The translations under genes were made by a program, and so were the position numbers. Positions 15,352 to 60,166 of a stretch of DNA of 64,000 nt are shown piece after piece. The notes under the pieces were generated by a model. It was given only the letters and a program-made list of their open reading frames with translations. It ran no database searches and was not told where the DNA came from. How positions within the stretch are numbered: the first letter of the stretch is position 1; each line of letters begins with the position of its first letter. The DNA comes from Anthoceros angustus. Taxonomy: Eukaryota > Plantae > Anthocerotophyta. Location of the stretch: positions 186,001-250,000 of the forward strand of contig VJWM01000172.1 of the NCBI GenBank assembly GCA_010909165.1, read 5' to 3'.

Positions 15352-18300
15352 TCAAGCACCTCCGAATTTTTTTGTGTGTTCAATCTTGAAAGCCTTCACT
15401 TCTCGGGTGTACATCCTGGGAGCTATGGCCATGGACATGAGCTCCTGAAACAGGAGCTTGCAAGCATATGGAACGTGGACTTGCACTATATCCGTCTTGT
15501 TCTTACATCCTCGGCACTCGTAGGTGTTCTTCTTCAAGTTGGCGATGGCGATGAGCCCGCAGTGCTGGCAGACATGTACTCTGTAAGCGTCGCTCTGATC
15601 GAAGAGTCTTTCCTTGAGGAAATGGGCTGCCCCATGTGCTATCATGCAGTCCCTCTCCATCTCCCCGAACCTGAGCCCTCCATCCCTGGACCTTCCTTCA
15701 GCAGGCTGCCGGGTAAGGATCTGCACGGGCCCTCTCCCTCGGGAATGGATCTTGTCGTCCACCATGTGCTTCAGCCTCTGATAGTAGGTGGGTCCTAAGA
15801 AAACCATGGCAGCCAGAGGCCTCCCTGTGTGCCCGTTGTACATCCTCTCGAACCCCCGCATCTGGTACCCGCACTTATTCAGTGCCTTGCTGATGTTGTC
15901 CACAGTGACATCCGTGAAGGGGGTAGCGTCCCCCTCCTTCCCCATGTGCGCTGCCACCTTCCCCATGATGCACTCGATCAGCTGCCCGATGGTCATCCGG
16001 GACGGGATGGCATGTGGGTTCACGATGATGTCCGGGGTGATGCCCTCCTGGGTCCATGGCATGTCCTCCTGCGTGTACGTCATCCCCACAGTCCCCTTCT
16101 GCCCGTGCCTGCTGCTGAACTTGTCTCCGATCTGCGGGATCCTGATGGACCGAACCCTGATCTTCACAAACCTGAGCCCATCAGCGTTGGTGGTGAGCAG
16201 AACCTGGTCGATCATCCCGCTCTCGCTGTGCCGCAGACATGTGCTCTGATCCCTCTTGGAGTATCTCTGATGGGTCTGATCCCCATGCTCCTCCCCATGC
16301 AGAGGAGTGGTCTTGCCTATGATCACATCCTCCCCAGACACCCTGGTCCCGGGAGGAGCCAGCCCATCCAGATCCAGCTTGTCATACGAGCCATGCCTCA
16401 TACCCGTCGTGTTCTCCCTGTTGGGCCTCTCGAACTCCTCCTTCACCAGGCTCCCCTGCTTCTTCTCCTCATCCCTGTACGACCTGTAGAAGATGGAGCG
16501 GAAGAAGCCCCGGTCTATGGCAGACTGGTTCATGATCACCGAGTCCTCCTGGTTGTACCCAGAGTAGCATGCAATGGCCACGATAGCATTGATCCCCGCA
16601 GGCAGCTGCCTGAAATGCAGATGCTCCATGGCCCTGGTGGTCACCAGAGGCTTCTGCGGGTAGTACAGCACGTAGGCCAAAGTATCCATCCGGAGCTGGT
16701 AGTTTGTGACATAGATCCCCATGGCCTGCTTCCCCATGGCAGACTGGTAGGTGTTCCTCGGGCTCTGGTTATGGTCAGGGAAGGGGATGATGGACCCACA
16801 CACTCCCAGAATCATGGACGGATGGATCTCACAATGGGTGTATATATCAGAGTATGCCTCATCCGGATTGTTCCTGGCATTCACAAGATCAGCAATGGTC
16901 ATGGAGATCATGGTCGTCTCCTCCTCCTCCGTATCCACATACTCGAAGAAACCCTTATCCACCAGCACATTCCACCCTCCCGCCGCCGACTCCCTCTGCT
17001 GCAAAGCCCTCATATCCGACTTCTTGATCAACAGCCGCTGCTTCTCCACGATAAACAAGGGCCGGCTACACCGCCCATAATCTGTGTACAGCCTCAGCTC
17101 CTTCAACCTGATGTCCCTCACAACCCCAACCTCCGGATTCACATCCACCTGCCTCCTCAGCGACCTCAAAGTCCTCACCAGCAGCTCGGGGTCCCTATGT
17201 ATCCCCACCCAACACCCATTCACAAACACCTTGGTGGAGTTGGGGATCACGGCAGGGGAGATCTCCTCGAACCCCTCCGTGCTCCACTCGTCCAGAAACT
17301 CCAGAATTGGGTTTGCCACAGATCCCACCGTGATGTAAGCCATGAGAGCCAGATTCTTCACCAACCCACAAGCTTGCCCTTCAGGAGTCTCTGCCGGGCA
17401 CATCATCCCCCAATGCGAATTATGCAGCTGCCGGGGCTTGGCCAGCTTTCCTTCCCTCCCGATGGGAGAATTCAGCCTCCTCAGATGGGAAAGGGTAGAA
17501 GCATAGGTCAGCCTGTTCAACACCTGCGACACTCCAGCCCTCACCCCCGCCGTGTTGGCCTGCCCCCAGTTCCCCGTTGCCAGAGAATACTTCAAGGCAC
17601 TGGTGATGGTCTTTGCCTTCACAGCATAGGCCAAATTCACATCCTTCCCATCATCCACACACTTCTGCAGATAGCTCCTCACATCCTTGGTCAGCTTCCT
17701 GAACAGCATCCTGAACAAACCTCCCAGCAAAGGTCCTGCCAGATCCAGCCTCTTATTCCCATAGTGATCCCTATCATCCTCAGCCCTCCTCCCCAAAGCA
17801 CAGAGCAGCAGCCGGTGGATGATGTATCCGAAGAAATACGCTTTCTTGGTCTCAAAGAACTCGCCTACTCCGACATGGGGAAGCATCTCCTTCTGCAAGA
17901 TCTCTTTCGCATACTTGATCCGCTTCTCCCTCGTCACCCCAACAGTGGATCCCCTCTTCCCGATATAATCCAGCGCCACCTGCTGGTTCTGGATCACAAA
18001 CGCCTCCTCCAGCGACGGCCTCAAAAGCTCCATCATGGCCGTGTCCGTGAAGTCGTAGCAGATGTGCTCCAGAATGTCCTTGTCTGCGACATAGCCCAGA
18101 GCTCGGAACACGACGATGATGGGAATCTCGGTTCTGATGTACGGGAGAGTGGCTCTGATGTACTGCCCCGAGGACCCCCCTTTTGCCCCGGCTCTGGAGA
18201 GCATGCGGACAAACATGCTGCTTGCTGGCCGGTTCTGATTCTCCGCCATAGACCTCACCTCCGCGACGAAAGCGTATTTGTTCGGCTGTCGTTTCTTGAA

Positions 18301-18921
18301 GACGTAGACGTGGTTTGTGCTCATTTTCTCCTGCGCGATCAGAACCTTCTCGCTGCCGTTGATGATGAAGTAGCCGCCCTGGTCGTAGGGACATTCTCCG
18401 AGCTCGGTGAGATCCTTATCCGAGTTACCATGCAGCGTGCAGTTCCGCGACCTCAGCATGATGGGAACCTTGCCAATGTACACCTTGGGGAGCTCCTCCT
18501 GCTCCACTTCCTCCTCCCCGTCGTCGCCCTTCCTCATCACCTTCTTCACCACGTCCATGTAGAGGGGAGCCGAGTAGGTGAGGTTCCGCAGCCTGGCGGC
18601 TTTCGGAAAGAGGGTGGCTGTCTCCCCGTCTGATTCTGTCATCATCGGCCGGCTCAGGTATATCTGCCCGAAGTTGATCTTGTACAGCGTCTCCCCCTGA
18701 TCCGCCTCCCCCGCGCTCCTGCCCGGGTTGTGCTGCGACTCCGAACGGATCTCGATGTCCGCCGACTCGTCCACGATCTCCTGCATCGTGTTCAGGATGA
18801 ACTCGTCGAACGAGTCCAGCTGCTGCCGCACCAGCCCTTTCTCTTCGAAGAAGGCGCTGATCACAGCCCACGCATCCTCCTGCGTGATCTCCTCGTCTTC
18901 TTCCTCCTCGTCCCCGAACAT
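15352..18921 (-). CDS. NRPB2: RNA polymerase II second-largest subunit, copy 1, intronless (1189 aa)
   Basis: One uninterrupted ORF with [51 protein letters not shown] and a C-terminal Zn ribbon. The track start at 18996 is TTG; the first ATG is 18921 (MFGDEEE). Confidence 0.98.
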
Positions 18922-19068
18922 TTCTGCTGCTGCTGCGTCTTCTTCTTGCGACCCCCAGCTGCTGCAAAGTGCGAGCGAACAAGCTTCAAGCTTCAAGAAC
19001 CGCCTCTTCCCGTCGCTGGGAACGCCGTTGATGTATGTACGTCGTGTTGAGGGTGAGCATGCTGACTC

Positions 19069-19581: not shown

Positions 19582-21929
19582 ATGGCTGCTCCGGCTCTGT
19601 CGACGCCCTTCCAGCCATATGTTTATCAGGTATGACTGCTTTGCGGAAAGCTGCAGGTTTTGATCTCCTCGTCGATGCGGTTTCGTAGTGCGCAATCGGC
19701 ACTCTATCGGTGTGCGGTCCTAGAGTGCTGTTAGGTTGGGTATGAGTCCGCAGCTGCTGGTTTTCTGTTAGCAAGGCCTGCAATTTCCTTGGATGCTTTG
19801 TTCAGCTGTGTGTAGAAGGAGACGAATGGTTTGGTTGCCATCTTATGGAGGTCTGGTTGGTGAATTCTAGTAGATTTGTAATTGCCAGAGTAGCTATGGC
19901 GCCGTGATTCTACTGTAGGAGTTCAGTTCGATTCGTGTGGATGCACCTTCTTGATTCAAAGGGTTCCTATGGTGTTTAGATGCATGACGCATGAATTGGC
20001 TGTTACAGAGTCCGCAGGCATCGATAACGCCGTTTCAAATACTTGGTGGGGAAGCACAAGTCGTACAGGCATGGTTTTTCTACCTCCTTGTACTGCTTCT
20101 TGCCTTTCCGGTCCTTTTCCTTTAGGTGTTTCTGACCTGTTATTGGTGCCTATTGTGGTGCAGATAATGTTGAAACCAGATGAGAAAATCCTAGCAAGGC
20201 CAGGTATGCGTTTTAGCGGTCACACGCTTGTTTGAGGAGAGCAAGACTGGGTCTGACAATTCCGATAATATGCAGGCACTCATGTCTCGGTTTCTTCTCA
20301 CTTCCTTGGTGCCTGTGGTGTGAACTGCATGCAGGAATGATGTGCTACATGTCTGGATCAGTGCAGGTGGAAAATAATCTACCTGTGGACAATAACCTCC
20401 TTGCTGGTTTCTTTCAATGGCTGTTTGCAAAACATCAGCCAACAATCACGTACTACTCAAGTTCCACAGCTCTTGTGATTGTCATGTGCACTGAACTATG
20501 CAACATGTGCACTCGTGGAAACCAAAATGTCAATGTTAATTCTAAAATGGCCAAACTGGTTGTGAACACTGTCTCAGGTTTGTCAACTCCGGAGGTGGAG
20601 ATGGCTACATTGGTTTAGCTGCCCCTGCACCAGCAAGGATTCTTCCAGTGCGGCCCTAGCCCTTAGTCCAAATTCGCCTTTTCGTCTGGAAGCACTGCTT
20701 GGAGACATTGATATCTAGCTGTGGTTCCTTGTTGACAGGTTGACCTGGCCTTGTTTGGTGGGGAGATTATCTGCCAGGTTTTGTTCCAAGCCTCTGGCAA
20801 AATGCACAGTGCCTTACTCTCCAACATGGCTTTGATTAACAATTCTGATTGTCTTGCAGCGGGATTCATATTTATGCTCCATCAATGACGTGAAAGTGTC
20901 CTCTCTCACAACCCGACGGGTGCGGGCTGGGTTTTTGGTGGCAGAGGTGGGTTCAATAGAATTTCGCTGAGTAACAGACTGAATGTGCTCGGCAAAGTAG
21001 CTGAGCATGCAATGATTAGATATTCTCGGCAAAGTTGGCTTGTCGAGCAGCCACTAATCTGTCAGGTCTGGTTGCAGGCTGTTTATATGCACAAGCTAGT
21101 AGGACGCGGGCTTGCCTTCATCACAGCTGGAGGGTCTAGTAGGTTCTTGTCTGCAGTAATACCTGTTTAGTTGGCATTCGCTGGTTCTGAATTGTCAACA
21201 AGATGCTCTCTGAATGTCTTTATGTGGTGTTGGTGGTGCCAATATCTTGCATTCCATGCCCAGACATGTCTTGCTGGATTTGCGCTTAACAGTCTCCATC
21301 CCGTGTGGTGTGTGCAGTTGTTCAAAAAAGTCTTGCCCGGGGGGAAGCGTTGATTGTTGATGCTGGTTGTGTTGTCGCCATGACAAGCAATGTCAGTATG
21401 GAGGTCAAATACGTCGGCAACCTCAAGTGGCCGTTGTTTGCGGTAAATTTTACTGTTCACCTGCAAGTTGCTATGTCTGTCAGTTGAGTTCATCCTAGGT
21501 TCACACGAATTGATTCTTCAAGAGTCCATCTGAACCAACTTGCGTCTGTATTGAGCATCCCACCTACAGCATGCAAGATGTTTTTATTTTGAGTCACCTC
21601 TGGCGGTTGGTTCTAAGGACGGAGTTCATGCATGTGTTGCAGAGTGAGGGACTCTTTCAAGCGCATCTGACCGGACCCGGAGTTGTCTTCATTCAAAGCT
21701 TGCCTTTCAGTCGCTTTGCTCAGCGTATAGCAAGGTACAGTCTATTTGGCTTCATCAGTTGTGGCGTTTCGGTTTGGTGCTTCGTGTTGTTCTGAGTTAA
21801 TGCCTCTCTTCTTTCAGGGCCGTCTCAAACTCTAATATGCGAGAGAACCCACGCGTCCTATTCCAACTCATCTTGTTCTTCTTCTTAGCTTATGTCATGA
21901 TTCTTACTTCGATACTCTTCTCCGAGTGA
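19582..21929 (+). CDS. AIM24: AIM24-domain protein (plant type, C-terminal TM), multi-exon
   Basis: MAAPALSTPFQPYVYQ | ITPFQILGGEAQVVQ | IMLKPDEKILARPG .. GYIGLAAPAPARILP .. LTGPGVVFIQSLPFSRFAQRIAR .. MRENPRVLFQLILFFFLAYVMILTSILFSE*. Includes a GC-AG intron at 20069-20163. Confidence 0.92.
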
Positions 21930-22434
21930 CCAAAGATATTTAGCTTGCTGCTGGCATGCAGAAGTCAAGGACGACTGCTTGCGAAAATGCAACAGGAAGG
22001 AAGTGCACATCCTTGAGTGTGTTTCCGGCTTAACTTTCTCTTAACTTATCGAAGCGGGAATGAGTTGAACTCTCGCAACCTTGAGACTAGAACTCCCGAG
22101 CATGCTGCTGTGACCAGGCTGCTATCCTCCTGATTTGGATCAAGGTCGTCAAGCTCTAGCAGTTCATGCATATTACCACAAATTTGCTCGAGTAGAACAC
22201 GAGCCCTGGATTTTAATCACACTGGCCATTTTTGTCTCTGATTTCAATGGCCGTCAAACCTGTATGCCTTAGCAAGTCGCGCCATGGCAATCAGCATAGG
22301 GAATCGATTTGGAACAATAACAGCCTCCGTTGTGAAAGTGTATGGGAACAGGATCTCCGGGCCTGTAAACCACAGCTCCACAAAGAAGCGTCATAGCGAA
22401 CCTGGTCAAGGACGTGACAACAATCGTTCTTACT
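21521..22434. repeat. Duplicated segment A (AIM24 3' end, intergenic DNA, PqaA last exon); partner at 24955-25800
   Basis: Colinear near-identity by eye, e.g. ATCTGAACCAACTTG.GTCTGTATTGAGCATCCCACCTAC and TTTGCTCGAGTAGAAC..GCGCCATGGCAATCAGCATAGGG in both copies. Confidence 0.92.
22254..22401 (-). pseudogene. Orphan frameshifted copy of the PqaA-like last exon
   Basis: Homologous to 25622-25771 but with 1-nt deletions (CATAGGGA vs CATAGGGGA; AAAGAAGCG vs AAAGAAAGCG). Confidence 0.85.
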
Positions 22435-25367: not shown

Positions 25368-25621
25368 TCAAAGATACTTTGCTTGCTGCTGGTATGCAGA
25401 AGTCAAGGACGACTGCTTGCGGAAGTGCAACGGGAAGGAAGTGCACATCCTGGAGCGTGTTTGCAGCTTCACTTTATCTTAACTTATCGCAGCGGAAATC
25501 AATTGAACTCTAGCAACCTTGAGATTGGAACCCATAATGACACAACTTTGCTCGAGTAGAACATGAGTCCTGAATTTTAATCACACTGGCCATTTTTGTC
25601 TCTGATTATCAGCAACGGCTA

Positions 25622-28535
25622 TCAAACCAGTACGCCCTGACAAGCCGCGCCATGGCAATCAGCATAGGGGAATCGATTTGGAACAATGACGGCCTCCGTT
25701 GTGAAAATGTATGGGAACAGGATCTCCGGGCCTGCAAACCAGAGCTCCACAAAGAAAGCGCCATAGCGCTCCTGGTCAAGCACATGACAACAATCGTTAC
25801 TATCAGAAAATATGAGCCGTAGCTTTGATAAACATTCTGGTCAATGTTTCCGGGCAAGAGATCTCTACTGTAAATCTCAACCCTGTTCGTAATGAGTAAA
25901 TATGAACTCTGCAAATATGGACTCTTCAAGCAAAAATTCCATAAACATGAACTCTGTGCAAATGAACCAGCGTGACATTGGAGTTGGAACCTTGGGGTAA
26001 GACAAAAGTGACTTTGAGCTCGCCAACATACCTCCTGGGAAGCTATGGATGCAGTGTAGGTTCTGACCCCATCAACAGTGGAAGGACTGATATTCTTTTC
26101 TCGGAAAAAGATGGGCTGGAAGCAGCCTCCCGAGATCACAAAAGTTGGGCTGCAACAGTTGTTGGCAACACATTTACATTGAAGATCTTAAGAAGCATAA
26201 AATAACCAGTAGGCAGCGACTCACCAGTCATCGATGTTGCCGGTCAGCCACCGGAAGTCCCGCCTCCTGCTGTCCTTGGTGTAAGCATACCACAAGGTCG
26301 CCTTTAGGGGCTTGTCTAGAGTTGTGATCTGTAGAATCCCAGTGTCCCTGTCAATTTGCCACCAGTAGCTGGGCCGACTGATGTTCAGCTTTGTCGGAGA
26401 ACAGGACCTCACGATGCTCATGCCAACATCATTCTCTGTCGAGGATGGTTGGAGGTTTGTTACTTTCTCACTTCCAGTGACGATGCTGAGATAGAATGCC
26501 TGCACAGCTGCTACAAGCTGGTGCACATATGTGGAAACCAGAATGAGTGTCCCCATTTGGTGTTACAGCAGCAAAGAGGCCATAGCATACGGTGCAGGGC
26601 AGTCATACCTTGACCAGCCCCGTTGCTAGTGAGTGCTCTGTATTGGGCAGTACCAGCATGTGCTTTTCGCCCTTCAACTCATTCCAGTAGTACAGGCTGC
26701 ATATACATGGCAGCAGGGAGTTTATCCTTCCTGAGGACTGCTATGGTTAAGCAACCACACAAGCTAACAAAGTATGTACCTGTCATCCATCAAGAAGAAC
26801 TCGTCATTTGAAGCGATGACAATGAGCTTTGGCATGGTGAGCCGTTCCTTGTACACCAAGGGGTCCACTATGCTCTGCAATGTACGAGAAGCATCATGAC
26901 GGGTCCCTTCTACCATCAGATGATACAGTAGCCCGCTTAAGAGATTTTGGAGACTGACCATAAGTTGTGCCATTTCCGGTGTATCCAGCTGTGCAGTGAT
27001 GTTCAGGGCGTAGTATGGCTGAAATGCAAAGGTCCAGCCGCCAAGAGATTGATAGAAGTGGTGAAGGTTTGGCACGAAGTTTAGGGCATCCATAACGATA
27101 GGGACAATCCCGACGACACGCTGCAGACCCACGCATGAACGTTAAGCTCATTCTTTCAACACAAGGACAGGCCATTGCAACTGTCAAAGTCTGCATTGAA
27201 ACCAAACAAGACCTTCTGTCGGCATGAACTGTACCACTACTGGTTGTTGGAGGGTTAGTAGGTCCATGCCTTGTCCACGGCACCTGTGGTCCAGGTTGTC
27301 CAACCACGTTTGCTTGCCCCGGCGACCACAAAACTGGCAACCTGTAAGATCGCAAGGTCAGAAACGCACTGTCCTAAGGTTCATGTACACCACTGGCCCC
27401 ATGTGGGCAGGTGGTCAATTGGATTGGGGATGCATGGAAGACCTCAGCATTCAGCTGTAGGCTGGCATATTCCTGAATCACATCCATTGCTCGAACAGCA
27501 GACTTGGTCATGGGAAGTCGAGCGAGCCATCTAGCACTGTCAGGGTGCTTCATAAAGTAGTACCAAGTATCTGGAAAACGTGTAGGAAAACAACGAAATC
27601 TGACTTAAGTTCAGCAGAAGAGATGAACCAGCAGAAGAGATGAACCAAGTAAGCAGGTGAAGGGAGTGCACAAACGGCAATCATTTGAAAATACAGAAGA
27701 CCTACAGGCAATGAGATCATCTTCATAACGATGCATTCGACTCCCATCACTTGTGAAACGGCAAGGCTGGTTGGGCACTTGATAAAGCACGGCAGTAATG
27801 GTCTTTGTGTTCACAGCAACACTAACCAACCAGGCAAACCATTACGGCTACATTCTCACAGCTCGATCACCTCCTTCTCCATACGGCATTGACATAAACA
27901 TAAACCTCATAACAAGGAATCCTTACGCCGCTGCTAGCTCAAGAAGCTCGTCTTTGGCTGTGGGCGGATCATTTGTGTTGCTACCTCCTCCGATGAGCAT
28001 AAACGCTGTGTCTACGTACTTGATTGAGCCAGGCTTCTGCAAGAGGAGTACAGAATCGACCAAACCTTCATTCATGCTGTCCATCTCACAAGAAGCTATT
28101 ACACCAAGTCAGACCACACTTCTCCTCACCACAATGACGAGGTGATGCGTCCAGACTGTACAGTCCACATCGTTGGTGGATAGCCACCCTTGGCTGGTCA
28201 TGTTTAGCACATAACCCTCCCATCTCCCCGTAGGAAACCATCCGTTCACTCGTGTGCCTGTGTCAAACCAGCTAGACAGTAGAGGACACCCTGCCTATGA
28301 GGCAAATTCCATCGAAGGATGAATTCTGAACCTAACAGCAGGACACTTCTCAACTGCTCCTCCCAGTTCTGATCATATCTAGCATGCATGCACACCTGAA
28401 GTGTGGATCTGGCTGAAGAATGTAATCGTCCAGAGGAGTCCCTAAGACTGGCCCACACAGAAGGACCCCGAGAAACAGTAAGAACATCGCTCCAATCCAG
28501 ATTCTTGCCATAGCTGCTGGCATGGCACAGTACAT
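25622..28535 (-). CDS. PqaA / AprA-like (PhoPQ-activated pathogenicity-related family) secreted alpha/beta-hydrolase-like protein, multi-exon
   Basis: Signal peptide then GTPLDDYILQPDPHF. Motifs YVLNMTSQGW, FMLIGGGSN, LYQVPNQP, YEDDLIA, LPMTKSAVRAMD, FVVAGASKRGWTTW, NFVPNLHHFYQSLGGWTF, IVDPLVY..MPKLIVIASNDEFF, LPNTEH, RRRDFR and C-terminal FTTEAVIVPNRFPYADCHGAACQGVLV*. ATG could be 28535, 28523 or 28511. Confidence 0.9.
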
Positions 28536-28906
28536 AGCAGCACCCACGTGCACTGTAGGGGATCAGACTGGGAAATTGGAGTGCGAGCTCAATGGTTGTC
28601 GGGGTCAAACGAGGGCGCAAGTGGACGAAGCTGAGATGCTGGATTTCGTTATTTTCCAAGAGCGACCCTCCAAACTGGAAACACGAACCGTCTTCTTTGC
28701 GACCCACTTCGCCGGACACGCTGTTCTCACCGGTGTGAGTGTCACCTGGCCCAGGAAAGCAAGTTCTTGATATCTTCCTCGTAGGATACCCTGCGACTAC
28801 GACTCTGCACCGCAGATTGCCTGACCCACATGCCCATCTTCACAACCATGAGCCCATCGTGTGACCTACATCACCTTTTTAGCAAGCATGAGCACTGTGG
28901 AAGAGG

Positions 28907-29590
28907 ATGCTGGAGGTTGTGCCTGACTGGATGCTGCATGCAGAGAATCAAAGTGTCAACAAGCGGACGGAGAAGATGGGGTACCACCACGTACTGTCCA
29001 AACATGAGGGTGCGATTGTCCAGCACAGCAAGGCCTTCGATCAGCAGGTTCTTCGAGGTAGAAGGCTGGAGAAAGAGCAGAAGCTAAAAGAAGTAATGCG
29101 GGAGGAGACTCAAATTCAAGACTGGTGGGGGAAGGCCAGAGAAGGGCAAGTGTATCGCGAACTCCAGGCAGAGCAACGGTACATCATCGATAAGCACTGG
29201 AGGCAAGAGAATTACTTCAGAAACTGCGCCGATGGGGAGGTTCACAGGATGAGGGAGGTGGCCACTCTCAAGATGGCTGAGAAGGAGCTCAACAGACTTC
29301 GCGAAATCGACGAGTTCAACCAACACGTGTGGGACATGGAGATCAAGTGGAGAGATTACGAGGCTGACAGGGAAAGGTGGCATGACAGGCGGTACCAGAG
29401 ATTCAGGGACAATTTGAAGATTCCCAAGATTTCTCTCATCACATACCCTGTGACGGTGAACAAGGTCCGCCTGTGCAAGTCCTTGGGCCTCGATCTCAGG
29501 AAACTGCCGATGCATGGAAATGCACACAGAGCACCTTGCCTGGATGGCAGCACTGGGCGGTTTGGAACTGACAATACCTATATCCGCTAA
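28907..29590 (+). CDS. Single-exon 227-aa hypothetical protein, charged/coiled-coil
   Basis: ATG-initiated ORF with protein-like composition (E/R/K/W-rich helical centre), divergent from PqaA. No family recognised. Confidence 0.65.
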   Translation: MLEVVPDWMLHAENQSVNKRTEKMGYHHVLSKHEGAIVQHSKAFDQQVLRGRRLEKEQKLKEVMREETQIQDWWGKAREGQVYRELQAEQRYIIDKHWRQENYFRNCADGEVHRMREVATLKMAEKELNRLREIDEFNQHVWDMEIKWRDYEADRERWHDRRYQRFRDNLKIPKISLITYPVTVNKVRLCKSLGLDLRKLPMHGNAHRAPCLDGSTGRFGTDNTYIR

Positions 29591-44810: not shown

Positions 44811-46136
44811 TTACAGCTCCACGGGCAGACAATGGATTATAGAAGCCACAAGAAAATCACAGGGCGCTACATCTGACCACACCACCCTCCCTATGATGTC
44901 GTCTTGCCGCACCTCCCCTAGCTCTAAAGCTGTAGTCACTAGCTCAGACTGCCTCCTCAACTCCCTCTTGCTTGGCCCTACCACATACAGCTTCCCCTTA
45001 CTGCCAGCAAGAATTGGCCCACATTTCAACCTGGGTAGCTTCTTGCCGCTGTCCCTCAAGTTGAGCGCCCTCCACAAATCCATGCCAGGATCATAGCCTA
45101 GAATATCGTTCCAGTGATTAGAACAGAAGAGAAAATTCCTGGCAATGGCTGCCTTTCCCTTCCACCCACTCTCCAGATTCCTTGAGATGGGCTCCCAGAG
45201 GTCCAACCCAGGTTCGAACACTATCCCTCCCGAGTCCGAGAAGCAGTATATCCTTCCTCCCAACACCACGCTCCCGTGCATCCACCGAGATCTAACTGCA
45301 GGACCACTCTGCACTACACTCCACCTATTGGTCTCCGGATCATACACCTCTGCCCAGGCATGGGAGCCCGCCCAGCACCCTCCAAACACGTAGATCTTGC
45401 CCTCCACTGTACCAGCCGCAGGAAACTCTCTGCGTACCCGCATCGGAGGCCCTAAAGCCCACTCACCCTTCAAAGGGTCGAATACCCACACTTGCTTGGA
45501 AGCAATGCCTCCCCGCAATCCTCCCATCAGAAAAACTTTAAAATTCACAACGGAGCATGCAGCACCGATAGGATGCCCGGGCAGGGACGGCAGCACACGC
45601 CAGCGCTGCTGCGAGACCTCAAAAGCTCTCCAGTGGTAACTCCCCTTGAAATCTCTCAACATTACGTACAGCCATTCTTCACAAAGGCCTTGCGAAGCCC
45701 TGAGGTAAAAAATGTTGGGATGCGATGAAGAACTCAGCATGTCCCGCCATGCCCTGCAAACCCCTCGCAGAACTCCATGAAAGTAGAAGGGAACCCGGAT
45801 CAGGCACTGCAGCGCCAAATCGTAGGGCAACCCTGGAATCAGCTCCTGGCAGCCCTCCCCTCCTCTGCTCGGCGCCCTCGGCGGGGCAACCTCGGCCCGT
45901 CTTGCAAACCCTAGCGCATCATCGTCCACAAACTCTCCAACCGTCTCCTGCAATTCGTCAGCCACTGTCTGCAGGAGCAAGGTCGTTTCCCGCAATGCGG
46001 CCTTGTGATCCAGGTCGAAGCTCGTGGAGCCCTCCCAGCCTCCTACATCCGGAACGCTCTCCAAGCATCTCCCAACCACGGTGTCGTCTCTTGACGCCAG
46101 GCCGATTCTCCCCTCACCCTCGCCTGCCATTGGCAT
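44811..46136 (-). CDS. F-box/kelch-repeat protein, intronless
   Basis: LIPGLPYDLALQCLIRVP F-box, then kelch repeats (VFLMGG, VYDPETNRW, IYVFGG). ATG at 46136 or 46130. Confidence 0.92.
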   Translation of the reverse strand: MPMAGEGEGRIGLASRDDTVVGRCLESVPDVGGWEGSTSFDLDHKAALRETTLLLQTVADELQETVGEFVDDDALGFARRAEVAPPRAPSRGGEGCQELIPGLPYDLALQCLIRVPFYFHGVLRGVCRAWRDMLSSSSHPNIFYLRASQGLCEEWLYVMLRDFKGSYHWRAFEVSQQRWRVLPSLPGHPIGAACSVVNFKVFLMGGLRGGIASKQVWVFDPLKGEWALGPPMRVRREFPAAGTVEGKIYVFGGCWAGSHAWAEVYDPETNRWSVVQSGPAVRSRWMHGSVVLGGRIYCFSDSGGIVFEPGLDLWEPISRNLESGWKGKAAIARNFLFCSNHWNDILGYDPGMDLWRALNLRDSGKKLPRLKCGPILAGSKGKLYVVGPSKRELRRQSELVTTALELGEVRQDDIIGRVVWSDVAPCDFLVASIIHCLPVEL

Positions 46137-46823
46137 AAGCAAGGGATTTCCCGCTCCTCGATTTTTGTCACCAAATTACTCGCCAAAATCTCTCCTCACT
46201 TGCAAATGATAATGCGAAGCCATGACACACACAATTGCAGCGATGAGGAATTGGATGCAGGATACCTAATCAGCCATGGAAGATTTTGCCCTACCGTACG
46301 AAGCGGGTTGCAGCAGCGCAGCTGGGAGAGTGGTGCACCATCGCTCTGGAGGAAAACACAAGAAAATTTCACCTTCCGCTCCCATGGCAGAGGCAGGACG
46401 CTCCGGAATCCACAATCAGAAGGGCCAACGGACAGGGCAGAGGTCGGGTAGGATCCGGAGGAGCTCGGCCGATCAGTCGCGCAATTCCGCTTCCCGATGC
46501 CGGCCCCCGCGCGACCGACGCGAAATGCCCTACGCAAAATGCTCGTACGCAAGTTTCGCCAGGGGTTTCGCCGGTTAAGTTCTCGGGCTCGCGTTCGCAA
46601 CTGTCTGAACTGCTCGTCTTGGCGCGGCGTGGAGGGTGGAGGAAGCTGAACCTGCCCATCGGCGTCTGCTTGCTTGCGGCGTGTTGTCACCCGCGCCTGG
46701 CTATGGTCTCGGCCAGACCCCTGTCGCTCAGTCGGATTTCTGCGTGCAGGACGCGGCATGGCCTTCGTCTGGCTATGGAGGTCGACCGGGAGGGACCCAA
46801 GGCTGACCAAGAGAGCGAGGACC

Positions 46824-48524
46824 ATGGCTGATTTCCTGGAAGAGCTCCCGGATCGAGCTGCACCCAAACCCTATCTGCATCGGCCCCAGCTACTTGTGGC
46901 TGCTCGATCGCTGCCGTTTGTAGCTTCGAGTTGCTTCCCGAGCCCCGTCAACCAGAGTGTCAGGTGTACAGAGCTCTTGACCTGCGTCAAGCATCTCCCA
47001 ATCTGGCAGGAGAGTCGTTGTCCAGTGTCATACCCGTCTGCTGGATGTTCTGTTCATGGCGGAACAAGTAGGTTTTTTAGTGGAGTAACTGGCCAAGGTC
47101 CCGGAGATGCAGGTGCAGCACCGGTACCCTCCCATGAAGTTGTGCTGCGCTATGGTCCTTTCCGCGACGACGTTAGGATCGGGAGGTATAAGATGGGAAA
47201 GACTCTCGGGTCAGGAAGCTATGGCTTGGTCAGGGCGGGCTTCAATGCCGAGACGGGGGATGTGGTGGCCGTCAAGATTATGAATAAGAGAATGGAGGCA
47301 TTTAAAGTGGCTCGTTGTAAGGACCAACTCCGTCGGGAGATCTTTGCAATGACTAAGGTGTCTCATCCGAACATTGTCCAGCTGCTGGAAGTGATGGCTT
47401 CCAAGGAGAGGATCTTTTTGGTGATGGAGCTTGTGCCCGGTGGAGATCTGGAGAATAGTGTGCGAGCCAGACCGCAGAAGCTAACCGAGGCCCAAGCAAG
47501 ACGATACTTCCAGCAAATTCTGACGGCAGTGGACTTCTGCCACCTGAAGGGCGTGTATCACAGAGACCTGAAGCCTGCGAACGTTCTTTTGGATGCGGAT
47601 GACAACGCCAAAGTTGCAGATTTCGGGTTGGGCGCCCTAGCAGACACAGACAACATGACGTATTTCACGGCCGACCTCTTACTGAAGTCGCAGGTTGGAA
47701 CTCCTCTGTTCATGGCTCCGGAGATCCTTGATTACACAACGAAACCGCAGGAGGGTAGTGCAGCGGGCTACAGCGGAGCCAAAGCTGACGTCTTCTCTTG
47801 TGGAGTTATCCTGTACTATCTACTTTCAAAGCAGGTCCCGTTCAGTTGGAGGGCTTCGATGCCAGAACTTCAGCGCCACAAGTTGCAAGCACAGTACCCT
47901 CCCTGGCCCACGGAGATCTGTGCCGACGCTCGGAAGCTTATTACCAGCATGCTACATCCCATCCCTGCCAATCGCATTGCGATGGCATCGATCTTCAAGG
48001 ACAGATGGTTCACGCAGGACTTGCGGCCTTCGAACTTCCGGATGGTGAAGAAGGTGGCCGCCAGCCTTGAGGAAATCGACAAAGCCTTCAAGGAACCGCT
48101 CCCCCTGGATCGTAGCAAGCTGAAGCCGGCCAAGCCTAATGCATTCGCTTTGATAGCGGGTGCACCAAGCTTCAATCTGGGACACATGGTACAAGACAAG
48201 CACACAGAATGGGAGGAGAGGCGATATATATCGAAGCTCCCAGCTCTCGAGATTCTGGGGAAGATTGCAGATACTGTGTCGCGTTTTGGCTACAACGCTC
48301 AATGCAGAGGATACAAAGTAAGGTTGGACGCAGCAGTGCCTAGCCGGCAAGGACCGCTTTGCATCTTAGCAGAAGTGTTCCAAGCAGACGACGACCTCGT
48401 CATCGTGGAGGTCCGCAAAGTGGTTGGGGATTCCAAGGAATTCAAGATCTTCTTTATTAAGTTCACTACGGCACTCGAGAATGTCCTCGAGCTTGTTGAA
48501 TGGACTCCAGACTTCGAAGATTAA
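46824..48524 (+). CDS. CIPK: CBL-interacting protein kinase (SnRK3), intronless across the kinase, NAF and C-terminal domains
   Basis: RYKMGKTLGSGSYGLV, VAVKIM, HRDLKPANVLL, DFG, MAPE, NAF motif KPNAFALIA and C-terminal KA1-like domain in one ORF. Start uncertain (46758 or 46824). Confidence 0.88.
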   Translation: MADFLEELPDRAAPKPYLHRPQLLVAARSLPFVASSCFPSPVNQSVRCTELLTCVKHLPIWQESRCPVSYPSAGCSVHGGTSRFFSGVTGQGPGDAGAAPVPSHEVVLRYGPFRDDVRIGRYKMGKTLGSGSYGLVRAGFNAETGDVVAVKIMNKRMEAFKVARCKDQLRREIFAMTKVSHPNIVQLLEVMASKERIFLVMELVPGGDLENSVRARPQKLTEAQARRYFQQILTAVDFCHLKGVYHRDLKPANVLLDADDNAKVADFGLGALADTDNMTYFTADLLLKSQVGTPLFMAPEILDYTTKPQEGSAAGYSGAKADVFSCGVILYYLLSKQVPFSWRASMPELQRHKLQAQYPPWPTEICADARKLITSMLHPIPANRIAMASIFKDRWFTQDLRPSNFRMVKKVAASLEEIDKAFKEPLPLDRSKLKPAKPNAFALIAGAPSFNLGHMVQDKHTEWEERRYISKLPALEILGKIADTVSRFGYNAQCRGYKVRLDAAVPSRQGPLCILAEVFQADDDLVIVEVRKVVGDSKEFKIFFIKFTTALENVLELVEWTPDFED

Positions 48525-56469: not shown

Positions 56470-59400
56470 TCACCCAGCAGATTTCTTCTGCTCCTTTTGA
56501 GACTTGGGGATTTCCTTCGTGAACATCCGAGGAGCAATGGCCATGGACATTAACTCCTGGAACAAGAGTTTACATGCGTAAGGAATATGAACCTGTACAA
56601 TGTCAGTCTTGTTCTTGCAGCCCCTGCATTCGTATGAGTTCTTCTTCAAGTTTGCAATGGCAATCAGACCGCAGTGCTCACACACGTGAACTCTGTATGC
56701 ATCACTTTGATCAAAAAGCCTCTCCTTCAAGAAGTGAGCGGCTCCATGGGCAATCATACAGTCACGTTCCATCTCCCCAAATCGCAGACCTCCATCCCGA
56801 GACCGACCTTCAGCAGGTTGCCGGGTGAGAATTTGCACTGGGCCTCGTCCTCGAGAGTGGATCTTGTCATCCACCATATGTTTCAGTCTCTGGTAATATG
56901 TCGGGCCTATGAAGATCATGGCAGCAAGTGGACGACCTGTATGTCCATTATACATCCGCTCAAAACCTCTCATTTGGTATCCACACTTGTGGAGTGCTTT
57001 ACTGATGTTATCCACTGTAACATCGGTAAAAGGAGTGGCATCACCTTCTTTTCCCATGTGAGCTGCCACCTTTCCCATGATACACTCGATCAGCTGGCCA
57101 ATTGTCATACGAGAGGGAATAGCATGCGGATTGACAATGATGTCAGGGGTGATGCCTTCACAAGTCCAGGGCATATCCTCCTGGGTGTAAGTCATCCCCA
57201 CTGTACCCTTCTGCCCATGCCTACTGCTGAACTTGTCTCCAATCTGCGGCACGCGAATGGAACGGACCCTGACTTTCACAAACCTGAGCCCATCAGCATT
57301 TGTTGTCAGCAGGACCTGGTCAATCATCCCACTCTCACTGTGGCGGAGACACGTGCTTTGGTCCCGTTTTGAGTATTTCTGAGCCTGACCACTTTGGTCT
57401 TCACCTTGCAGGGGGGAGGTTTTTCCTATGATGACATCTTCACCAGAAACCCTTGTTCCTGGAGGGGCCAGACCATCAAGATCCAGCTTGTCATAGGAGC
57501 CATGACGCATCCCTGTCGTATTCTCTCTGTTTGGCCTCTCAAACTCCTCCTTCACCAAAGTCCCTTGCTTCTTCTCCTCATCTCTGTAAGAACGGTAGAA
57601 GATGGACCGGAAGAAGCCACGGTCGATGGAAGACTGATTCATGATAACAGAATCCTCCTGATTGTACCCAGAGTAGCAGGCGATGGCCACAATAGCATTG
57701 ATGCCTGCAGGGAGCTGCCTAAAATGCAGGTGCTCCATGGCCCGGGTGGTTACAAGTGGCTTCTGTGGGTAGTACAACACATATGCCAGGGTGTCCATGC
57801 GCAGCTGATAATTGGTGACGTATATCCCCATAGCTTGCTTTCCCATGGCAGACTGATAGGTGTTCCTCGGACTCTGATTGTGGTCAGGAAACGGAATAAT
57901 GGACCCACAGACTCCCAGAATCATGGACGGGTGAATTTCACAGTGTGTGTACGTATCTGAGTAAGCCTCATCTGGCACATTTCTTGCATTCACAAGATCT
58001 GCAATAGTCATGGAAATCATAGTAGTTTCCTCTTCTTCAGTGTCCACATACTCAATGAACCCCTTATCCACAAGGACATTCCAACCACCAGCTGTATTCT
58101 CCCTCTGCTGCAAGGCACGAATATCTGACTTCTTTATGAGGAGCCTCTGCTTGTCGACAATAAACAATGGGCGACTGCAGCGCCCATAATCTGTGTACAG
58201 CCGCAGTTCCCTAAGTCGAATATCACGCACCACTCCTACCTCAGGGTTGACATCAACCTGTCGCCTCAAGGAGCGGAGAGTCCTAACAAGCAAATCAGGA
58301 TCACGATGGATGCCCACCCAGGAACCATTTACAAAAACTTTGGTGGAGCTGGGAATCACGGCTGGCGATATCTCCTCAAAACCCTCTGTGCTCCACTCGT
58401 CCAAAAACTCCAAAATGGGGTTGGCCACAGAACCTACAGTGATGTAGGCCATGAGAGCCAGATTCTTCACCAAACCACAAGCCTGGCCCTCCGGAGTTTC
58501 AGCAGGGCACATCATTCCCCAGTGGGAGTTATGCAGCTGCCTCGGCTTTGCTAGCTTCCCTTCACGACCAATCGGGGAATTCAACCTCCGCAGATGGGAG
58601 AGAGTAGAAGCATACGTCAGCCTATTCAACACCTGCGACACTCCAGCTCTCACACCTGCAGTGTTAGCCTGACCCCAGTTCCCCGTTGCCAGCGAATACT
58701 TGAGACCACTAGTGATAGTTTTAGCTTTCACTGCATATGCCAGATTGATATCCTTCCCACTGTCAACACACTTCTGCAGATAGCTGCGCACATCCTTGGT
58801 CAGTTTCCGAAACAACATCCGAAATAGCCCTCCCAACAGGGGCCCGGCAAGATCCAGGCGCTTATTACCATAATGATCCCTGTCATCCTCTGCACGACGG
58901 CCTAGGGCACACAGTAGCAGCCTGTGAATAATGTACCCGAAAAAATAGGCCTTCTTGGTCTCAAAAAACTCCCCCACACCCACATGAGGCAGCATCTCCT
59001 TTTGCAAAATCTCCTTGGCATACTTGATACGCTTCTCCTTGGTCACTCCCACCGTGGACCCCCTCTTCCCGATGTAATCCAGAGCCACCTGCTGATTCTG
59101 AATGACAAAAGCCTCCTCCAAAGAAGGCCGCAACAGCTCCATCATGGCAATATCGTTGAAGTCATAGCATATGTGCTCCAAAATATCCTTATCAGCCACG
59201 AACCCCAAAGCCCTGAAAACAACGATAATAGGAATTTCGGTTCGAATGTAGGGCAGCGTGGCGCGAATGTACTGCCCCGAGGACCCCCCCTTGGCCCCCG
59301 CTCTGGACAGCATCCGCACGAACATACTACTGGCCGGCCGGTTCTGATTCTCAGCCATAGACCGCACCTCGGCAACGAAAGCGTACTTGTTCGGCTGCCG

Positions 59401-60078
59401 CTTCTTAAACACATACACATGGTTTGTGCTCATCTTCTCCTGCGCGATCAAAACCTTCTCACTCCCGTTGATAATGAAGTACCCGCCCTGGTCATAAGGA
59501 CACTCTCCCAGCTCCGTCAGGTCCTTGTCCGAATTCCCATGCAAAGTGCAATTCCGCGACCTCAGCATGATGGGAACCTTGCCGATGTACACCTTGGGGA
59601 GCTCCTCCTGCTCCACCTCCTCCTCCCCGTCGTCCCCCTTCCTGATCACCTTCTTCACCACGTCCATGTACAGGGGCGCGGAGTAGGTCAGGTTCCGCAG
59701 CCGAGCTGCCTTAGGGAAGAGCGTGGCCGTCTCGCCGTCCGACTCCGTCATCATCGGCCTGCTCAGGTAGATCTGCCCGAAGTTGATCTTGTACAGCGTC
59801 TCCGCATCCGCCTCCGCATTCCTCCCCGGATTGTGCTGCGACTCGGACCGGATTTCGATGTCCGCCGACTCGTCCACGATCTCCTGCATCGTGTTCAGGA
59901 TGAATTCGTCGAAGGAATCCAGCTGCTGCCTCACCAGCCCCTTCTCCTCGAAGAAGGCGCTGATCACAGCCCACGCATCTTCCTGAGTTATCTCCTCGCT
60001 TTCCTCCTCATCGTCTTCGTCCATCTCCACTTCCCCTCCCTCTCCTTCGTACTCATCCTCCTCCTCCCCCCCATACAT
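56470..60078 (-). CDS. NRPB2: RNA polymerase II second-largest subunit, copy 2, intronless (1202 aa)
   Basis: One uninterrupted ORF with all RPB2 motifs. The track start at 60105 is GTG; the first ATG is 60078 (MYGGEEED). Confidence 0.98.
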
Positions 60079-60166
60079 CTTTCCTTTCCTTTTGTTCCCT
60101 TCCACTCTCAGCTAGACGTTCTTGTCGGCGAGTGCCGCAAGTAAGGGGGACTGTCACCCCCTCGCG

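Follow-up and report, generated by a model that had tools for sequence, protein, structure and literature searches.

A probable hornwort orthologue of an old gene of the green lineage that encodes a probably secreted serine hydrolase of peptidase family S82

Introduction

How a hornwort comes to carry a gene for a putatively secreted hydrolase of a family that is abundant in bacteria is the question raised by a locus of Anthoceros angustus. The locus was analysed in a stretch of 64,000 nucleotides (contig VJWM01000172.1, positions 186,001 to 250,000, forward strand), which is called here the window and whose first letter is position 1. The family is PhoPQ_related (Pfam PF10142, MEROPS S82); Salmonella PqaA and Dictyostelium AprA are both members of it, AprA being the S82 type member. 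The family is filed as a peptidase family and is barely characterised (PMC11878206). AprA is secreted, has a predicted likeness to DPPIV and a reported DPPIV-like protease activity, and acts as a proliferation repressor and chemorepellent through GrlH (a G protein-coupled receptor), a chalone and chemorepellent role known in Dictyostelium only (PMC8326840). Within the family, hydrolase activity is reported for AprA alone (PMC8326840). Secreted multilamellar bodies have a paralogue of AprA as one of their major proteins (PMC4920372).

The original prediction for this locus, made from the letters of the window, had assigned the gene to the PqaA/AprA family, had offered ancient horizontal acquisition or loss in seed plants as alternative histories, and had proposed a maximum-likelihood tree and a comparison of intron positions as checks. 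According to the analysis reported here, the locus is, with a probability of about 0.8, the orthologue of a gene that is old in the green lineage and encodes a putatively secreted serine hydrolase of PF10142/S82. The gene belongs to a known family that is unstudied in plants: no literature linking PF10142/IPR009199 to plants was found, and the PF10142 clusters in the Protein Atlas were animal-dominated only, with no plant information.

Results

Family membership and conserved residues

The gene comprises 12 exons (Table 1), whose translations were searched exon by exon; they were joined only for placing the introns on an alignment and for adding one row to the trees. Eight exons (2 and 4 to 10) each scored above the PF10142 gathering score of 20.3 bits (20.7-52.8 bits, E values from 1e-4 to 3e-14) and fell in order along the profile, a match far beyond chance. 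Exons 1, 3, 11 and 12 had no Pfam match of their own and were aligned to homologues instead, and the only other Pfam family found among the exons was DUF4357, a weak match below threshold (E 0.026). The Riccia orthologue (P0003) matched PF10142 at 340 bits, this being its only Pfam family at E <= 0.001. When the piece of exons 7-8 was used in an exhaustive HMMER search, 838 relatives were returned, most of them matched as two stretches flanking the in-frame intron 7.

Conservation was read from 94 aligned homologues of plant, animal, protist and bacterial origin. All 69 columns conserved in at least 90% of these homologues are retained in the window's protein. The elbow GASKRGW is found at residues 220-226 and its Ser, Lys and Gly are invariant (94/94). 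The three catalytic positions are Ser222 (Ser in 94/94), Asp314 in NDEFF (Asp in 93/94) and His343 in NTEH (His in 94/94). The protein ends in DCHGAACQGVLV, which fits the family C-terminus DCxGxxCxGxLV, and its Cys527 and Cys532 are both present in 81 of the homologues.

A strongly hydrophobic stretch was identified only at residues 3-36, with a Kyte-Doolittle peak of 2.3 at residues 8-36, and is followed by TPLDDY, which is common to the whole family. There is no other stretch resembling a membrane span in the protein, and the orthologues have the same N-terminal hydrophobic segment. This composition points to a signal peptide at the N-terminus that would route the protein to the secretory pathway, with TPLDDY following the probable cleavage site. 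The family assignment made in the original prediction, together with its nucleophile, acid and histidine, its putative signal peptide and its Cys-containing C-terminus, is supported.

Distribution among organisms

A collection of 5.8 billion proteins was searched with a liverwort (Riccia) and a lycophyte (Diphasiastrum) query, and the best 120 matches of each were considered. With the Riccia query all the plant and algal orthologues ranked above every non-plant match. They comprise liverworts (Riccia, Marchantia paleacea and Calypogeia), mosses (Sphagnum, Ceratodon and Physcomitrium), the lycophyte Diphasiastrum and the streptophyte algae Klebsormidium, Spirogloea and Closterium. The lycophyte query returned the same plant set plus the chlorophyte Chloropicon. 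Next in rank were choanoflagellates, sponges, amphioxus, molluscs, echinoderms and phagotrophic euglenids, and then bacteria, where relatives are present in at least 597 species genomes and the proteins are about 40% identical to the plant ones. No fern, gymnosperm or angiosperm protein was identified among the best 120 matches of either query. Had an orthologue been inherited vertically in these groups, it should be expected to appear beside the other plants, so a seed-plant protein missing from these lists favours a loss of the gene on the line to seed plants, which is how its presumed history is read here.

The land-plant orthologues are 52-57% identical to the window's protein over the full length and have the same domain order. 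The closest known proteins are the uncharacterised orthologues of Riccia fluitans (R1flu_007918), Marchantia paleacea (Mapa_015202), Ceratodon purpureus (M758_4G272900), Diphasiastrum complanatum (O6H91_12G017200) and the alga Klebsormidium nitens (KFL_002940100), and the bryophyte, lycophyte and streptophyte algal orthologues form one clade with the window's protein in every tree, with divergence at the level of lineages only. On four Logan contigs of 1.9-3 kb the full-length reading frame runs without a break, as was confirmed for P0156 and P0002, and to judge from these frames they are spliced transcripts of orthologues from other plants or algae.

More distant relatives share parts of this description. 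The animal homologues, named "AprA-like" by NCBI, are about 40% identical to the window's protein. Dictyostelium discoideum AprA, compared here by description, has the same Pfam family and a similar size, and its secretory signal would have a counterpart in the predicted signal peptide of the window's protein. Salmonella PqaA and the other bacterial PhoPQ_related proteins share the family, the GxSKRGW elbow, the C-terminal domain and the Cys pair; the bacterial elbow is GGSKRG in 46 and GASKRG in 30 of 80 sampled genes. The bacterial members differ in being split from all the eukaryotic ones (100/100) and in having no introns. Regulation by PhoPQ is an enterobacterial trait.

Phylogeny

The history of the gene agrees with the plant species tree as far back as the streptophyte algae and a chlorophyte. 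In a quick LG+C20 tree of 77 rows the support was 95 for Streptophyta, 89 for Viridiplantae with Chloropicon, 96 for land plants, 99 for animals and 100 for the split between bacteria and eukaryotes. In a careful maximum-likelihood LG+G4 tree of 49 rows the corresponding values were 100/99, 100/97, 97/93, 100/95 and 100/100. The topology was identical in both, with the plant clades inside an all-eukaryote group, and these clades stayed unbroken in a 130-row FastTree that included 53 extra unlabelled cluster representatives. A maximum-likelihood tree had been proposed as a check, and in those built here the plant clades mirror the species tree, with the bacteria apart.

In the careful tree the window's protein is placed in a group with the mosses and the lycophyte pair (98/95), the liverworts being apart (100/99), which is the placement expected of a hornwort. 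Its terminal branch is 0.39, the median being 0.40. From these clades the gene would go back to the Viridiplantae ancestor. Bacteria were sampled with a bias towards relatives of one Rhizobiales protein, so the deep origin of the eukaryotic family is not settled by these trees.

Gene structure and intron positions

The pieces of the gene were first read from a six-frame translation of positions 25400-28750 and from tblastn of the window with three homologues (Riccia fluitans P0003, Sphagnum fallax P0001 and the Logan transcript P0002), whose alignment runs from the signal peptide to the last residue. For the splice junctions, all frame-keeping donor and acceptor pairs were enumerated and the choice was made by homology and splice consensus. 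The resulting coding sequence, from an ATG at 28535 to a stop at 25624-25622 on the minus strand, comprises 1614 nt with one terminal stop and none internal, and encodes 537 amino acids. The limits given in the original prediction are exact from start codon to stop; its description of the gene as rich in introns holds, although the number is 11 and not about 10.

All 11 junctions keep the frame. The introns are of 75-260 nt and 10 of them are GT-AG; a GC donor was adopted for intron 6 because the sole GT alternative would remove the conserved V-D-K. Short introns and one GC-AG intron are what distinguishes the window's gene from its orthologues. The counterpart of intron 6 is GT-AG in Riccia and Ceratodon, and Ceratodon has a GC-AG intron at position 1.

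Exon maps were taken from the genomic loci of five annotated orthologues (Riccia, Ceratodon, Klebsormidium, amphioxus and Sycon, with Diphasiastrum left out) and placed on one alignment. The intron phases of the window's gene are 2,0,2,1,0,0,0,2,0,2,0, and this second check gave a result of the same kind as the tree: all 11 introns are identical in position and phase to those of Riccia and Ceratodon, and seven are common to Klebsormidium, which has four of its own. The plant intron pattern alone excludes a recent transfer or a contamination. Contamination was in any case rejected, being ruled out by the plant-specific common introns and by the plant genes in the neighbourhood. With its 12 exons, these common introns and those neighbours, the locus is a nuclear gene, as had been claimed.

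The AprA-like genes of amphioxus (Branchiostoma floridae) and of the sponge Sycon ciliatum have all 14 intron positions and phases in common, and the 14 introns therefore go back to early animals. None of the 11 plant introns coincides with them. This lack of sharing is compatible with intron turnover and is weak evidence.

Predicted fold and proposed mechanism

An AlphaFold2 model was obtained for the Riccia orthologue with the alignment of 94 sequences, standing in for the window's protein, with a predicted local distance difference test score (pLDDT) of 92.7 and a predicted template modelling score of 0.91. The model has a signal helix and four N-terminal strands, followed by an alpha/beta core (119-363) that a disordered linker joins to an all-beta C-terminal domain (394-533). 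The Ser has strand 210-216 before it and helix 218-229 behind it; the Asp follows strand 301-306 and the His strand 328-333, so that the modelled Ser-Asp-His order is the canonical one of hydrolases. The C-terminal domain alone, folded without an alignment, gave a pLDDT of 33.5, a value too low for use. A long low-complexity insert was identified in the inter-domain linker of Klebsormidium nitens and of the P0002 transcript, which groups with Spirogloea and is probably from a zygnematophyte; the linker that bears it in these two is the one disordered in the Riccia model.

Solved structures yielded no sequence match for the Riccia orthologue, either directly or by the profile of 94 sequences, and the PF10142 family is without a solved structure. 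By fold, the closest to the Riccia model were CE7 acetyl esterases (Z 21-22), followed by S9 catalytic domains including that of DPPIV (Z 18-20). The CE7 acetyl xylan esterases and cephalosporin C deacetylases (3fvr, 1l7a and 1vlq) match the catalytic domain over 280-287 residues with a root-mean-square deviation of 3.3-3.6 Å and 12-16% identity; the match spans nearly the whole CE7 chain, including its N-terminal extension, and CE7 lacks the all-beta C-terminal domain of the window's family. The CE7 elbow motif is GxSQG, whereas the window's protein has GASKRG. Membership of CE7 (AXE1) by sequence was discarded, PF10142 being the sole family and the likeness being in fold only. The S9 peptidases (acylaminoacyl peptidase, puromycin hydrolase and DPPIV) match in the catalytic alpha/beta domain with 11-15% identity, in agreement with the published prediction of a likeness between AprA and DPPIV (PMC8326840). 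A place among the S9 prolyl oligopeptidases and DPPIV was discarded as well, with no Peptidase_S9 match found and no beta-propeller in the model.

Because of the CE7 and S9 fold matches and of the reports on the secretion and DPPIV-like activity of AprA, the product is best seen as a likely secreted Ser-Asp-His hydrolase with a small ester or an N-terminal peptide as substrate. Its catalytic domain would be an alpha/beta hydrolase with a CE7-like N-terminal strand extension, in which Ser222, set in a strand-turn-helix elbow, would be activated by His343 and Asp314. The Cys527-Cys532 pair may staple the all-beta C-terminal domain. The enzyme would probably work extracellularly or in a lytic compartment, cleaving a small ester or else the peptide bond at an N-terminus.

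Genomic surroundings

The features of the window are collected in Table 1. About 3.2 kb downstream of the gene is found a duplicate of some 570 bp that takes in the tail of intron 11 (27 bp), then exon 12 and some 320 bp of the 3' flank; it is a dead fragment. The two Rpb2-type genes, encoding 1214 and 1211 amino acids, are about 41 kb apart and 95% identical in protein and 82% in DNA over 3.5 kb, and look like the products of an old duplication that strong purifying selection has preserved. The CIPK-type kinase and the F-box/Kelch protein are ordinary plant nuclear genes. The coiled-coil-like open reading frame (ORF) starts about 370 bp upstream of the hydrolase ATG on the opposite strand and may be a divergently transcribed neighbour.

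Table 1. Exons of the hydrolase gene and other features of the window, with the basis of each assignment
Feature	Position	Strand	Basis or remark
Entire coding region, with 12 exons, 11 introns and a 537-aa product (precursor of a PF10142/S82 hydrolase)	25622..28535	-	Colinear with Riccia over full length
Exon 1: start codon (alternative ATGs 28523, 28511), signal-peptide-like hydrophobic segment, then conserved TPLDDY, predicted start of mature protein	28396..28535	-	
Exon 2: N-terminal beta strands, conserved LNMTSQxW motif	28130..28271	-	PF10142 positions 24-55, 21.6 bits
Exon 3	27927..28036	-	Homologue alignment; no Pfam match of its own
Exon 4	27706..27821	-	PF10142 positions 93-128, 28.1 bits
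Exon 5	27443..27570	-	PF10142 positions 130-165, 30.4 bits
Exon 6: nucleophile elbow GASKRG 27320-27303, Ser222 codon 27314-27312	27270..27341	-	PF10142 positions 172-194, 37.7 bits
Intron 6: GC-AG, donor aag/GCATGG at 27269	27121..27269	-	Sole frame-keeping junction retaining conserved V-D-K
Exon 7	26959..27120	-	PF10142 positions 195-248, 52.8 bits
Exon 8: predicted catalytic acid in NDEFF 26808-26794, Asp314 codon 26805-26803	26780..26874	-	PF10142 positions 250-278, 36.5 bits
Exon 9: predicted catalytic His in NTEH 26644-26633, His343 codon 26635-26633	26609..26696	-	PF10142 positions 282-304, 21.7 bits
Exon 10: end of catalytic domain, variable linker, start of all-beta C-terminal domain (RRDFR motif)	26225..26517	-	PF10142 positions 283-367; orthologue secondary structure
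Exon 11: C-terminal beta domain, Cys449 and Cys458	26032..26149	-	Homologue alignment
Exon 12: conserved C-terminus FPYADCHGAACQGVLV with Cys527 and Cys532, then stop	25622..25771	-	66% identity to Riccia
Degraded partial duplicate of the gene's 3' end	21862..22428	-	88-90% identical, frameshifts in exon part
RNA polymerase second-largest subunit genes (Rpb2-type), intronless, single ORF each	15352-18996 and 56470-60105	-	All seven Rpb2 Pfam domains
CIPK-type kinase, intronless, single ORF	46674-48524	+	Pkinase and NAF domains
F-box/Kelch protein gene, single ORF	44811-46142	-	
227-aa highly charged, coiled-coil-like ORF	28907-29590	+	No Pfam match

Discussion

The history of the gene is judged here from the trees and the introns taken together. 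Acquisition from bacteria, by land plants or by the Anthoceros lineage, would agree with the abundance of the family in at least 597 bacterial species genomes, with the 40% or so of identity between bacterial and plant proteins and with the plant introns having no position in common with the 14 of animals, but it has to face the 100/100 split between bacteria and eukaryotes, a single plant clade whose order, chlorophyte, then streptophyte algae, then land plants, is that of the species tree, and 11 old introns common to liverwort and moss, seven of them reaching Klebsormidium; such an acquisition is considered extremely improbable. A transfer later than the origin of Viridiplantae is contradicted by these data, and an earlier one, into eukaryotes, is possible. 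Given the 0 of 11 introns coinciding with the 14 of animals, a separate entry of the family into plants and animals from unsampled donors may be conceived as well, as a long shot. Of the two histories offered in the original prediction, loss in seed plants is the one retained, whereas ancient horizontal acquisition is not supported for land plants or streptophytes, given the species-tree clades and the common introns. The old green-lineage gene would thus have passed from the ancestor of Viridiplantae to bryophytes and lycophytes and have been lost on the seed-plant line. There is little room for a decaying or silent relic, unexpressed or non-functional in Anthoceros angustus: 1614 nt over 12 exons are read without stop or frameshift and with 11 junctions in frame, the 69 conserved columns and the triad are complete, the terminal branch is ordinary (0.39 against a median of 0.40), and it is the nearby duplicate that, by contrast, is frameshifted. 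What speaks for such decay is the non-canonical GC donor that one intron requires and the presence of that degraded 3'-end duplicate about 3 kb away.

As to function, the original prediction had suggested a possible action in the apoplast, on microbes or as a density signal. The protein might by analogy with AprA be a non-enzymatic secreted signal, a density or repellent factor working through a receptor with catalysis irrelevant. This would suit the action of AprA through GrlH as a secreted proliferation repressor and chemorepellent (PMC8326840) and the abundance of its paralogue in secreted multilamellar bodies (PMC4920372). However, from bacteria and protists to animals and plants the triad does not vary, a constancy that speaks for conserved catalysis, and AprA itself is reported with protease activity (PMC8326840); a signal of this kind is regarded as unlikely. 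A further reading is that non-seed plants retain an AprA-like secreted S82 hydrolase that in free-living gametophytes might regulate growth, spacing or density from outside the cell, or might process peptides, either microbial or the plant's own. This reading is speculative and quite doubtful; if true, the S82 hydrolase would have been lost in step with the gametophyte's reduction in seed plants.

Some points weigh against the locus being an orthologous gene for a secreted serine hydrolase. The exon and intron model and its splicing rest on homologues and sequence, and the gene's own protein was absent among the full-length search matches, the exon 10 query giving one unrelated match of 37%; the collection is seemingly without sequences from Anthoceros angustus, so this absence says nothing on expression. 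The absence from ferns and seed plants, from which the favoured loss is read, is an absence from ranked lists of the best 120 proteins, with no genome scan. The fold was modelled on the Riccia orthologue, which shares 53% identity with the window's protein, and the folds nearest to it include esterases as well as peptidases, at an identity of 12-19%.

With these points considered, a candidate for horizontal transfer is removed and its place is taken by an old, vertically inherited gene of the green lineage, one of many kept by bryophytes and lycophytes and lacking in seed plants. The value of the finding is modest and lies in the plant branch of S82, which is wholly unstudied, and in a family for which no structure has been solved. 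By analogy, the prominence of AprA as a secreted growth repressor and chemorepellent raises the question of whether the plant proteins may have a role in signalling or defence.

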